A DNA stretch of 64,000 bases, taken from the NCBI GenBank assembly GCA_003693705.1, contig RBZT01000623.1, positions 124,001 to 188,000 of the forward strand, read 5' to 3'. The translations under genes were made by a program, and so were the position numbers. This DNA is from Polymyxa betae A26-41 (lineage: Eukaryota > Protista > Endomyxa: Phytomyxea). Within the stretch, counting starts at the first letter, position 1. Each line of letters opens with the position of its first letter. The notes below the pieces were generated by a model that ran no database searches, had not been told where the DNA came from, and worked only from the letters and a program-made list of their open reading frames with translations. Shown piece by piece: positions 23,235-42,300 of this stretch.

Positions 23235-26200
23235 CTAAACCCGAGCCATTCGGCTCCAGTCGTCAAGAGTGACGGTTGACAGGAGAGAGCCCAAAGCCAG
23301 CTTAGAAACGATTCTGTTATCGAGAAGGTCCTCTTCTTCCGAGCCGTTCTTGCCAATATTACAGTGGAAACGGCCAAGAGCTAAGCGAGACAATTTGCTG
23401 TTGTTCTGGTTCTTTAAGGCGTCAGCCAGAGATGCCTTCTAGACAAAATTTTAGGAAAACCAAGTTTTAAATGCAACAGAAGTATTACCTGGACCGAAGA
23501 GAGTCTTGTTATATTCAGCTCTGAGGCGTCTAATTCCCACAAGAACTCATTACTTCGTATCGCGGTTTGGAGAATGCCGAGAAAATCGGGTGCCGCTCCG
23601 TCGCTATCTAAACTCGAGCCTTCTGCATCATGACATGGAGCTAAGCCAGGAATACGAATGCGCAAAAGATGATCCCTATGCGCCCAATCAATAACGGTCA
23701 AAACCTCTCAATCAACCAAGACTTAATGAGAAAAACGTGACTATAAGTGACAAAATCTATAGAGCTGCTCACGAATTAGATTGAATGAGCTGCGCAATCG
23801 TTAGCAAGCTGCCATAATCAGCCGTGTTCCCAGCAAGATCAAGAACTTGAAATCTCTTATGTCTGGTCGCAATCTCACATAGATCCTTGTAATTAGTATC
23901 GGTGAGAGCGCAGTTAGACAGAACCAGGACCTGGACACGCCTCATGGCTTCTAAAAACCCTTGAAAAGAAAGTTCGTCGCCGAGACGGCAGCCATCCAGA
24001 CATAATTGCTCCAAGTTACAATATGGATCGGAAATGGCCAGTGTCAGCGCCCTGACTCCTTGGCTGAACAGACAGGCTTGCGAAATATCCAATAATTGAA
24101 TTGAAGGAATCGTGGTATTTGTAGGGAGGTTGTCCCAACTTATGTACGGCCCACCTAAATTCACACGAACCAAATTGATTGAGCTCAAAATCAACGACAC
24201 ATCAGCAGATGATAGTTGGCATCCGAACAGATTCAATGTTGTCAGATTGGGATGTCGTACTATGTCATCGATGAAATTATCACGTTGGGCAGGCAGGACA
24301 TGATTCGATAGATCCAGATGTGTTAAAGTTGAAGCGAACGTCGTCGAATTCTCAAGATCAGTTAACGTAGATAATTTGTTGTCATGTGAGATAGAGGCAA
24401 TAGCGATATTGCCTTTCGATAATAAATTGAGGTATGGCCCCAATAAATCGTTGTTGTTGCCGGTGAGATCGATCTTGATTAATGCAGGTAAAGATACCAA
24501 GTCTTGAGCCAAGTTAGCAAGACTCTGAGCTGAAGCCTGAGCATTATGCGCGATGTTCAGCGATGACAAGGACAACATTGAATGAAGCCACTGCCCTAAC
24601 AAATTCATTCCGTTGTCAGAAATATCGCAGTTTTGGAGGTTAATCTTCTGAAGCTGGCAGCCAATGGCAGTCTGTACCAATTGTTCGACGCCATTGTCGC
24701 CCAGATGATTCTCACTCAAATCAAGCGATATGAGAATCGCGTTCGATGCCAGGCTCTTGCCAATTTGCTGCAGAGCGAAATGATCGAAACCAGGGCTAAG
24801 TTCGCTGCAGGAAAACTGGATTGACTGCAATGATTTTGTAGATGCGAATGCTAGAAACAAAGGACGGGCATGACTCAATCGGTTACGGGACAGATCGACG
24901 CCGATTAGGTTGACGGATTCAGCGACAAGACGAGCTAAGGAGAGTGCCATCTCGCCGTCAGCAATGATGTCAGTATTGGATAGATCCAGGTACTTCAGCG
25001 ATGTGGATTTTGCCGCTGATTGCAACAATCGTTGAAACTGCCAGCTCTCTCCCACCTGGTTGTTACCAAAATCAGTATTTGCTGGAAATTTTGAGACGTC
25101 TAAGCAGTCTCAAGCATAAAAAAGAGAACAATCGAAAGCTGCAGTGTTGGCAACATTTTGACTAGGAAATAGAAACCGAGAAGTTTGGCAAGAAACTGAG
25201 AACCAACTTTGGTTTTGCCTCCTTCTGGAATCTGAACCATAGGAGCCTGCCCCAACCGATTATCGCTTAAACACAACGTCGTCAGGACAGGAGACGATTC
25301 AATGAGTTCAGCGATAAAATCTGAATCCTCATAAGACAAATGGCATCCTTGCAGAGTGATATGCTGAATATTCGCCCTTGGAAGGCGGCGAAAGGCAGCG
25401 TATAAACCCAAAGGCATCGAAGACCAACGATTCAGTTCCAGGCAGTGGCGCAGCGTTAATGACGTTATGGTCGGTGATTCCAGAACGGCGTCGGCGACAG
25501 CTTTGAGGCCGACAATCCCAATCGGAATCCTATCGATAGTGAGCGATTGGAGAGGTCGAGAGCGCGCCTGCCGAAGAAATGGCTCCCATGCCGAAACGAA
25601 TCCGCTTTCGGCGCAGCGGTACCAGAACTTGTCGACATCGCGATCGATATCGACAGCAGAGCGGTTATGACGTGGATGGCGGCTATCGGCGTCGAGACCT
25701 TCCAGCGAATAATCGTGCTCGCCGTGTGCTATTTCGGTCTACAGAATAACATTTGAATAATAAACACATTCAAAAAGGAAACATTAAAGACACAGAAGAG
25801 GCCGCACAAAGGTTGAAGGAGGGTTAAAATCGTCTTGGTTGAAACAAAGGGTCATTTGACTCATACCTGAAGAATCTCATCGCTTGTGACATGTTCCTGA
25901 TCGAGATGTTCGAGGTCGGAGAGCAGAAACACGAGATCGGATCGGTAATGTTCGACACCGGTGACAGCATTGCCTTTCAAGTTCAGATCCCGTAACAATG
26001 CCAAATCTGACAGATCCGCCAGCGCCAACAGCGACTCGATGGCATTATCGGCCAGGTCTAGTACGGCCAGATTCGGGAAGCAATCACTGATCTCGCCGAC
26101 ATGATTGATCCGGTTCCCGGAAGCATCCACGTATCGAAGCGACGAAATTGGCTCGGCAATTTGCAAGGTGGTTAAGGCGTTGTTTGAGATTTTTAAATGG

Positions 26201-26715
26201 GTTAAGTAAGAAGAACCTTGAAGACCTTCAAGATCGGTTATGTGATTGTGAGATACGTTCAGCATCTGTAAATTCGATAAAGATTGACACCAATTCACTG
26301 ATATCAGCGAATTCGACTGTAAATTCAAGTCGGTGATATATCGATATCTTGCAATATCGCCGCGTATTGACCCGATCTCGTTGAATGATAGATCGACCTT
26401 CGTCAATAGACGAGGATAGGCATCGCCATCGACACCATTGCCGAAATCAGGGAACTCTATCAATGCGTTGTGCGACGCGATCAAAACTCGCAGCTGCTCT
26501 AGCGGCGTCAACGCCTTCAGCGATCCGATCCGATTCGACGAGACATCGATCGACCGCAGGAATGTAAACTGAGACAATGGTGACAGGTCCCGTATAAAGC
26601 TGGAGCTCAGATCCAATGACACTCTCTCATGCTTATGGGTGCTCGACGATATCGAGATCGTCGACAGACGATTTGCGATCTGCTCTTCAGTAATCGTCCC
26701 ATTATTGTAGAGCAT
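23235..26715 (-). CDS. Large leucine-rich-repeat protein (SDS22-like LRRs and LRRcap, then RNI-like LRRs), one multi-exon gene
   Basis: ORF 25861-26715 ends at a GTATGA donor. The acceptor near 25740 continues in frame into ORFs 25100-25417, 23769-25055 and 23414-23701, with a last exon ending at a TAG at 23235. Confidence 0.7.
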
Positions 26716-26824: not shown

Positions 26825-27365
26825 TCAGAAGGTTTCCGATTTGGCGGCAGGCGAGACGATTCGGAGGCGGTCTTGAAGCTGAAGCGACTTAAGCAAAATG
26901 TTGAATCGGGTTCTCATTAATAAAATTCGGCTAGAGAGTGAATGGTCTTTGTCTAAGGTAATCGCTGCCTGGCGAGTCTGTTCGATTGACAATTGTAGCT
27001 GCTGCAAGGCTCTCTCGGTTCTAAGCTATGATGTTAGTCGAGTGCGCTGTAGATGAAGAGAGATCCGACCTGGGGCTCAGCTCGATTATTTGGCGATTGC
27101 CCAGGTCGGTGACGGAATGGGCGAATCCTGAATAGTATCCAGCTTCGAAGCCAACACGCTTAGCCAGAGCTTGACCATGATTTCGAGCTGAATCGATCAA
27201 GGCCTGGCGAGCACACGAGACTCTAAACCGAAATGAATAATCGTGATCAGGAGAGAAATTGCAACTGGTTCACCCTTGATCATATCCAATTTTGACGAAG
27301 GTCTCTTCCAGATTCAGAATCTCGTCGAATCCTTCAACAATGTCATCAGTGATGTTCGCCTCCAT
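26825..27365 (-). CDS. LTO1: LTO1/ORAOV1 (Yae1_N domain) protein
   Basis: Three exons read FDEILNLEETFVKIGYDQG...G..GFEAGYYSGF. The first two exons are missing from the ORF track. Confidence 0.75.
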
Positions 27366-27603
27366 CGATGACAGACCGCGCCCATCAAAGTTAGTCCGGA
27401 ACGGGGAAATCCAATCGGATTTTGTGTCTGAACTCATTTCTTACAAAGAAAGCTAAGCATTTCGTAGCTACTGTATATCTATCTGATTTCATATTTTTCA
27501 AACTGAAGTCTGTAATTTGGTTTTTTGAATTCCAGTGTGTTGACATTTTGTTGGGAATTGTTTTTGCCGGCCAGCGAGACCTTGGCCGCCGGTACTTCTA
27601 GAT

Positions 27604-27922
27604 TCCAGTAAGGCGGAATGGTACCAAAACCGGTAGTAGGATCTTTACAACTAAGATCGGGCTATGTGGATTGGATTGGATTGGATTCGACTAGTTTAGG
27701 TGATTATAAACCAGGGCGGTGATCTTTCTCATAACACCGGGCTCTGCGATCGAAGTCGTAACGTAACAACTTCGCGGGATGCTCAGAGTTCTCTGAAATT
27801 CAGAGATACCGGAATGTCACCCTTCCACGGCAACATTTATGAAGGCGTTGCCTGATCGGGCTATGTGCAGGAAGTCTCTGTACCGCCTTTAGCAATGCGA
27901 ACCAGAGAAATCCAATCCAATC
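27604..27922 (+). mobile_element. Putative short non-autonomous retroposon (outer element, about 120 bp without the nested insert)
   Basis: Flanked by the exact repeat CTTCTAGAT (27595-27603, 27923-27931). It ends in a stem-loop (TCTCTG 27875-80 / CAGAGA 27903-08) followed by (AATCC)3. Confidence 0.55.
27669..27853 (-). mobile_element. Putative short structured retroposon (inner element, 185 bp) nested in the outer element
   Basis: Flanked by the exact 14-bp repeat GATCGGGCTATGTG (27655-27668, 27854-27867). The minus-strand 3' end is a stem-loop plus (AATCC)4 abutting the repeat. Confidence 0.65.
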
Positions 27923-27998
27923 CTTCTAGATGAAGGTGAGGGTGCTCTTTGGCTCAAATATTGAGTCCAGCGCGGTTAGCACGCTGCGCCGATCGTAA

Positions 27999-28170
27999 CG
28001 ACGTGACGGTGTCGGACACGTTGCATCGCTGGACAGTGGAGAGAGGTCAGACATGACACATGCCAGTCAGTTGAGGGTTTGCTCAACTGTCACATGGGGG
28101 AACCCTCGCCCCTTGTGTGCTTTATCATGTCATGTTGGTCATTTTCAAAACTAACTGCATCCGTTGGTTC
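27999..28170 (+). promoter_or_regulatory. Promoter blocks conserved with 29919-30101
   Basis: Ordered blocks CGACGTG, CGTTGCAT, GAGGTCAG, AGGGTTTGCTCAACTG, CATGTCAT and CATCCGTTGGT. Confidence 0.65.
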
Positions 28171-28181
28171 ATTCATCGCCA

Positions 28182-28654
28182 ATGCTTATGAAGCTTACGA
28201 TCATGATGGCGCTTGTCCTGCTGACCCTCGGGGTCTCAGCGTCAGACGGGTGTAAGTAATTTCACGTTATTGATCAACTACAAGTTTAAACATCTCTGTT
28301 ATAGATGATAGGCGTCCGAGATCATATACACCCACTCTACAATCTAAGATGATTAACTATGTTCTTTTTCCTATCGTGGCGCCACTAACGATCGTTTATC
28401 TGGTGATGAAGATCCTTTATGCTGACAGACTTGGCCTGTGGCTGAAATTGCTGTCTCTGGCTGGTGTCGGATACTTGCTCTGCCTACTGGTTTTTATGTG
28501 GCTTTATTACCAAACTGTTTCAGTCCTTCGACTATTCGCAACAGTGTCAGATGTCTGCAGTACATTCACAATACGCGATGTTGTTAGGGTTCTAATTGGA
28601 GCACCTAAAGCAACGTTCTTGTCTCTCCGAGAAATCTGCCGCGGAGACCCTTAA
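28182..28654 (+). CDS. Small signal-peptide multi-pass membrane protein, paralogue 1
   Basis: Exon 1 (MLMKLTIMMALVLLTLGVSASDG), then phase-1 intron 28252-28304, in frame with ORF 28349-28654. Confidence 0.75.
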
Positions 28655-42270: not shown

Positions 42271-42300
42271 AATCAAATCCAATCCAATCCAATCCAATCA
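42271..42300 (+). repeat. (AATCC)n / tandem CCAAT microsatellite
   Basis: AATCAAATCCAATCCAATCCAATCCAATCA. Confidence 0.85.

Follow-up and report, generated by a model that had tools for sequence, protein, structure and literature searches.

The 64-kb window analysed in this study, which is the whole stretch of DNA under study, corresponds to C846:124001-188000 of a Polymyxa betae assembly of 27,085,814 bases in 1001 contigs, and this assembly was the genome searched. Two nested elements sit in the window between two divergently transcribed genes. The minus-strand gene begins at 27437 and is presumably continuous with LRR-encoding ORFs downstream (23769-26715). An exact-product look-up of one neighbouring ORF gave nothing on record. 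Contigs from four public runs were spliced, with a 51-nt intron at 27223-27273 (minus strand) and a 53-nt intron at 28252-28304 (plus strand); therefore, the four runs are RNA. One run contig was unbroken over 27274-28056, so both elements lie within a transcribed stretch. Since the contigs carry no strand or end information, the position of the elements is an inference, and they are most simply placed in the 5' UTR of the minus-strand gene. Contigs of the two divergent genes ended 36 nt from each other in one of the runs (28056-28092), which suggests a compact bidirectional promoter.

The sequence was read over 27300-28200. The outer element occupies 27604-27922 on the plus strand, with a perfect 9-bp target-site duplication (TSD) on either side. 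The inner element occupies 27669-27853 on the minus strand, splits the outer element, and has a perfect 14-bp TSD on either side. Both elements terminate in (AATCC)n. The coordinates of the parts are listed in Table 1.

Table 1. Parts of the two nested elements, with positions in the window
Feature	Position	Strand	Remark
Outer TSD, 5' copy (CTTCTAGAT)	27595-27603	+	Identical to 27923-27931; recovered by the TSD scan
Putative outer mini-SINE, 5' part	27604-27668	+	Profile R2; last 14 nt (27655-27668) double as the left inner TSD copy
Inner TSD, left copy (GATCGGGCTATGTG)	27655-27668	+	Identical to 27854-27867
Tail of putative inner SINE copy, (AATCC)3.8 (GATTGGATTGGATTGGATT)	27669-27687	-	Sequence read, tail-pattern count
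Inner element body	27688-27853	-	Putative SINE positions ~295-465 of 484; 5'-truncated
3' module of inner body	S2 27699-27712; CGCC 27715-27718; S1 27719-27737	-	One mismatch per stem in this copy
Inner TSD, right copy (GATCGGGCTATGTG)	27854-27867	+	Outer-element sequence; uninterrupted paralogues carry the 14-mer once
Putative outer mini-SINE, 3' body	27868-27908	+	Profile R1: 47 loci
Outer S1 hairpin (7 bp, 5-nt loop), closing directly on CGCC	27865-27883; CGCC 27884-27887	+	P=0.03 versus shuffles
Outer element tail, (AATCC)2.8 (AATCCAATCCAATC)	27909-27922	+	Sequence read, tail-pattern count
Outer TSD, 3' copy (CTTCTAGAT)	27923-27931	+	Identical to 27595-27603

This layout had been proposed by a sequence-only reading of the window, and re-reading confirmed the nesting, the duplications and the tails at every coordinate. 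The boundary between tail and TSD was ambiguous by 1 nt in the outer element (C27923) and by 2 nt in the inner element, nucleotides that could belong to either; the microhomology of 1-2 nt described earlier was thus recovered. The two bodies had been called unrelated and non-coding, which holds apart from a common 3' module. No ORF of at least 60 aa on the element strand overlapped the inner element in the 64-kb window. The earlier description also held that both tails end in one register (CAATC before a final C). This was not general: tails of other copies end in various registers, and the shared register of the two tails is therefore coincidental.

A 14-letter tail pattern occurred 7 times in the window, compared with 0.07 expected from shuffles. 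The probability that a 9-mer after a tail recurs by chance within 330 bp upstream was estimated by us at roughly 0.01. A third (AATCC)n tract was observed in the window at 42271-42299 (plus strand), with 4.8 units at 42276-42299 and a linker, AACTAATCA, before the tract. The segment 42225-42299 (plus strand) may be a degenerate element of ~75 bp between ACGGTTTC and ACGATTTC, which differ by one mismatch.

Families of the inner and outer elements

A similarity search of the assembly with 27669-27853 gave 13 matches at 73-91% identity. Aligned in element orientation, the copies had one common 3' end with a tail and differing 5' ends. The longest copies were L002:1207-1690 and its counterpart in L003, of 484 and 486 nt and 97% identical. 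The copies in L002, L003 and L006 have a common start position and are flanked by TSDs of 14, 12 and 15 bp, respectively. The window copy corresponded to positions ~295-484, that is, to the last ~190 nt. The alignments assign the inner element to a putative SINE-like family of ~484 nt with at least 13 copies, as a copy truncated at its 5' end. It had been predicted that the inner body would be multi-copy with AATCC tails and differing TSDs, and this was borne out by the 13 matches and by the TSDs of 12-15 bp in three full-length copies. The description of the inner element as a 185-bp family has to be replaced by that of a truncated copy of the longer SINE.

The first ~85 nt of this SINE, its head, contained an A-box-like motif (TAGTGCGGTGG) and a B-box-like motif (AGTTCAACTCC), which were recognized by eye ~40 nt apart near the 5' end. 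Searches of the head with ARAGORN and Rfam (E up to 10) gave no tRNA and no other family. The head was found at only seven loci; three of these were head-only, and in two of the three the head was followed by T-runs. The head-only copies of ~85 nt are L021:1505-1597 (minus strand), L025:1501-1606 (plus strand) and L026:1122-1202 (minus strand), 88-93% alike. The T-runs follow the copies in L021 and L025, and tRNA-Gln and tRNA-Leu genes lie no more than about 1 kb from the copies in L021 and L026. The head-only loci gave no Rfam or ARAGORN match. These units are candidates for an unrecognized Pol III small-RNA gene.

Further features were observed around other copies. In L006, a 679-bp insertion (L006:1742-2420) breaks a full-length SINE copy at SINE position ~218, and no second copy of this insertion was found among the retrieved loci. 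The SINE copy in L006 lies 16 nt from a (GGATT)2 of opposite orientation. A second block common to the SINE body and LINE 3' UTRs was present at L002:1372-1418, at L053:1128-1173 and at the end of L092. Its version in the LINE has a B-box-like motif (GGGTTCGAGTCCC); the block also contains GGATTGG, which is complementary to the tail, and it sits upstream of the part kept in the window copy. Run contigs of other SINE copies had 10-40 times the depth of the flanking genes, which copy number alone could explain.

For the outer element, plain BLAST with the 5' half matched the genome only at its own locus, and the 3' half had one other genome match, in C86 (L031). The rejoined halves measure 120 nt and align to L031 over 84 nt across the inner insertion point, with the 14-mer present once. 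Profile searches were more productive. Profile R1 (3' 70 nt) matched the genome at 47 loci, of which 25 had E<1e-3, and profile R2 (5' 65 nt, from 27604-27668) matched 23 loci. The outer body looked single-copy by BLAST because its copies are too diverged; the earlier proposal that it is multi-copy is thus supported by the profiles, and plain BLAST did not support it for the 5' half. At no fewer than 16 loci, R1 and R2 matches abut on the same strand with the expected overlap of ~14 nt. They span about 95-122 nt, in most cases 109-122 nt. Among the R1/R2 loci are C667:6366-6487, C798:42962-43081, C460:8157-8272, C310:9898-10006 and C846:271122-271238. In most loci the R2 matches begin at model positions 5-9, which suggests a common 5' end near 27604-27610. 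The best reading of the outer element is that it represents a putative mini-SINE of ~115-120 nt in nearly full length, with 5' ends taken from match coordinates.

Judged by these matches, the loci (at least 16) are probable uninterrupted paralogues of the outer element and can serve as empty-site paralogues for the inner insertion. As they carry the 14-mer once, it would have been part of the outer element and have become duplicated on insertion of the inner element. An empty-site allele was not found in the four public runs over 27100-28400; all had both insertions, without differences. A check for empty sites in other isolates had been proposed. None appeared in the four runs, and for the inner insertion the uninterrupted paralogous copies give equivalent evidence.

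Searches of 27590-27680 with ARAGORN and Rfam (E up to 10) gave no tRNA or known RNA family and only chance-level hits; by these tools, neither a Pol III promoter nor a small-RNA head was found in the outer element. An A-box-like motif (GGCGGAATGG), seen by eye, was the sole promoter-like motif. The hairpin search gave no convincing second hairpin in the outer element, and its 3' end had no match to the retrieved LINE 3' ends beyond the hairpin-CGCC-tail module.

Genome-wide tails and the shared 3' module

The pattern (AATCC)3 had 206 matches in the genome and the reversed control pattern had 0. The 100 listed matches collapsed into 72 tracts, from which a total of about 150 was extrapolated. 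Flanking direct repeats had been predicted for such tracts. An exact TSD of at least 9 bp from the tail end was found for 12 of 36 distinct tails, compared with 2-4 of 36 in shifted controls, so the predicted enrichment was observed; nine of the 36 real tails had a TSD of 12-16 bp. The elements defined by these TSDs were 91 to 1290 bp long, which is the pattern expected from 5' truncation. Tail/TSD microhomology of 1-3 nt was present in 8 of the 12 TSD-bearing copies, with a mean of 1.33 nt versus a chance value of 0.33 (binomial P=0.003), a result consistent with base pairing between the nicked target and the RNA tail.

A telomeric origin of the AATCC tail was considered and rejected, since contig ends carry TTAGGG-type repeats in telomeric orientation. 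Several contigs start with an AATCC tail (C92:1-20, C166:5-19, C382:4-18, C465:1-20 and C580:5-19). These starts look like assembly breaks at a dispersed repeat, not like chromosome ends. In C156:293-355 (L058/L059), two AATCC tails face each other with ~35 bp of telomere-like CCCTAA-type repeats between them; the target of these insertions may have been (sub)telomeric repeat DNA.

The region before the tail was compared among 26 distinct 3' ends aligned with MAFFT. A near-invariant CCGCC was found about 35-40 nt before the tail; a linker rich in A and similar to AACTAGTCG came next, and then the tail. In 13 of 20 distinct 3' ends, a stem of 4 bp or more closed exactly on CGCC, and the mean stem length at CGCC in the anchored hairpin count was 4.0 bp versus 2.3 bp in shuffles. 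The stems showed paired changes between families: GTGAT/ATCAC, GTGCT/AGCAC, GCGTT/AGCGC, GCAC/GTGC and GCGCG/CGCGC. The stem of the outer element was GTGCAGG/TCTGTAC. In most families a second hairpin followed CGCC. Over its last ~65 nt, the inner SINE matched LINE-type ends in L012 and L040 at 80% identity, and this part contained the common module.

RNAalifold predicted no pairs on the MAFFT alignment of the 26 3' ends, because the stem registers differ between families. Single-sequence folds were no better than shuffles (z from -0.1 to -1.4). In view of these two results, the structural claim is held with moderate confidence: the LINEs and both SINE families have in common, upstream of the tail, a covarying hairpin closing on CGCC, as judged by the anchored count and by covariation seen by eye.

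LINEs with the same tail

RVT_1 matches with a LINE-like span of ~700 bp were found on several contigs. In C587 and C202, the RVT_1 match lies 1.9 kb upstream of an AATCC tail on the same strand. L084 and L073 contain Exo_endo_phos, RVT_1 and RNase_H domains; L084, L073 and L092 matched PF03372/PF14529 and PF00078, with PF00075 downstream. L013 has an (AATCC)4 tail with an RNase H ORF 735 nt upstream of it. Tail-bearing loci were linked to RT-bearing loci by tblastx, and the same tail was carried by two or more LINE lineages that differ in their 3' UTRs. The domain matches point to autonomous LINEs with AP-endonuclease, RT and RNase H that share the AATCC tail with the SINEs. The sequence-only reading had anticipated an RT-encoding LINE ending in the same tail, and such loci were found (C587, C202 and L013). 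It had also assumed one mobilizing reverse transcriptase. An RT-encoding LINE family with the same tail and 3' hairpin module is indeed present; it comprises at least two or three lineages, so "one LINE family" is the better wording.

No intact LINE copy was found among the few copies inspected; all had frame breaks and several ORFs. LINE relatives from other sources had a weak zf-RVT match after RNase H. The names given to the LINE homologues in their sources were inconsistent ("Zorro 1 L1-like", "jockey" and "BS"). A sequence search of the RT against the PDB gave no match at E<=0.001. A 7-kb contig of a Beta vulgaris assembly (L092; GCA_000510975.1, contig KI812040.1) was observed to carry this LINE, with APE, RT and RNase H, at ~80% DNA identity to L084. 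The contig probably stems from Polymyxa or a relative that contaminated the beet assembly, and the LINE would then not be a plant element.

Proposed mechanism and comparison with known systems

The nested pair is very probably the product of two successive target-primed reverse transcription events carried out in trans by a LINE family. In the first step, a mini-SINE RNA of ~120 nt would have been copied into the plus strand at the target CTTCTAGAT. Later, a SINE RNA of ~484 nt would have been copied into the minus strand inside the outer element, at the 5' edge of its 3' hairpin. The second reverse transcription would have stopped early, so that only the last ~190 nt were inserted and 14 bp were duplicated. 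Both RNAs would have been mobilized in trans by the LINE family encoding AP-endonuclease, RT and RNase H. The 3' module at the end of its copies is made up of a hairpin closing on CGCC and a second hairpin, after which come an A-rich linker (AACTAGTCG or a variant) and (AATCC)n. By analogy with stringent-type LINEs, the RT would recognize this module, the nicked target DNA may anneal to the (AAUCC)n tail and prime synthesis, and tail length may vary by slippage on the repeat.

Another origin was considered for the outer element, namely that it is not a SINE but what severe 5' truncation left of another LINE lineage, its 3' end. Very short truncated LINE ends with TSDs are common in this genome (91, 92, 103 and 130 bp), similarity to L031 is limited to the last ~84 nt of the outer element, around half of the best R1 matches lack an adjoining R2 match, and no small-RNA-like head was detected by ARAGORN or Rfam. 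However, the starts of the R2 matches are mostly confined to the few model positions given above and are not scattered, and no R2 match runs past position 1 into longer homology. The R1-type end was on none of the retrieved RT-bearing loci, and no R1 match lay near an RVT_1 match on the same contig. A truncated LINE end was therefore judged quite improbable as the origin of the outer element.

Two readings without nested retroposition were also weighed. Because the two tails are inverted relative to each other and about 220 bp apart, 27669-27922 could be taken for a single MITE or foldback element with (GGATT)n and (AATCC)n as terminal inverted repeats. However, this tail pair has no flanking duplication; instead, separate TSDs flank the two halves. 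Elsewhere, copies of either family have a single tail at one end only, and the tail-bearing elements grade into RT-encoding LINEs. The foldback reading was rejected on this copy structure of single tails and separate TSDs, and its probability is close to nil. The remaining reading holds that no mobile element is involved and that direct repeats lie by chance beside pentanucleotide microsatellites; only the shortness of the 9-bp repeat favours it. Against it, both bodies are multi-copy, the tail pattern outnumbers its reversed control by 206 to 0, TSDs are enriched over shifted controls, and tails are always at the 3' end of a conserved module. Chance was likewise rejected on copy number, tail counts and TSD enrichment, and hardly any weight is left to it.

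Two successive insertions by a LINE family in trans, the preferred reading, can be compared with reported LINE/SINE systems. The eel pair UnaL2/UnaSINE1 is of the stringent type and has a tandem-repeat tail, (TGTAA)n (PMC3747384). In stringent-type LINEs and SINEs, the stem is variable and a few flanking bases are fixed, and tandem-repeat tails have been linked to template slippage (PMC3747384). The Polymyxa elements were similar to the eel pair in that SINE and LINE have a common 3' end made up of a conserved hairpin and a short tandem-repeat tail. Tail length is variable, TSDs and 5' truncation are present, and the stem varies while a few flanking nucleotides are fixed (CGCC here). They differ from the eel pair in the RNase H domain of the LINE, the AATCC tail unit and the plasmodiophorid protist host, and trans-mobilization is here proposed from sequence.

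In the I-clade, the Drosophila I factor has a (TAA)n tail (PMC3747384). The order of AP-endonuclease, RT and RNase H and the non-poly(A) tandem-repeat tail were consistent with the I-clade and other RNase H-bearing APE LINEs, whereas the weak zf-RVT match after RNase H in relatives is more in line with L1-like elements of the plant type. A 3' stem-loop with a conserved 3'-flanking CGAG is present in the stringent LINE/SINE pairs of the plant L1 clade (PMC3747384). These pairs resemble the Polymyxa elements in the variable, covarying stem followed directly by a short invariant motif, an end that SINEs borrow. The plant pairs have poly(A) and CGAG, whereas (AATCC)n and an invariant CGCC were found here. 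Entamoeba is a protist parasite with paired LINE/SINE families (PMC3118788). The compact genome, the pairing of LINE and SINE families and the insertions near genes are points of likeness to the present system. Entamoeba LINEs have a restriction-enzyme-like endonuclease and different tails.

The mobile AATCC-tailed retroposon system first suggested for this locus was upheld by multi-copy families, TSDs of variable length and a LINE with the same tail and 3' hairpin. Its interpretation as a putative stringent-type LINE/SINE partnership is supported, with the corrections given above. The mechanism is that of a textbook, ordinary LINE/SINE partnership. No description of SINEs or of an AATCC-tailed LINE in plasmodiophorids was found in the searchable literature, and the announcement of the Polymyxa betae draft came without repeat annotation (PMC6328671).

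The results provide the first worked-out LINE/SINE system for the Polymyxa betae draft. It includes two or more non-autonomous families and several LINE lineages, together with a defined 3' module and the diagnostic (AATCC)n tail. As markers, the families are of practical use in masking repeats, correcting gene models and typing strains by the insertions that they carry or lack. A further idea, speculative and on balance unlikely, is that the ~85-nt SINE head came from an unrecognized Pol III small RNA and that annealing between tail and target steers insertions to existing elements and gene-proximal regions. If this were true, the LINE/SINE system would shape the promoters and 5' UTRs of a parasite with a compact genome.
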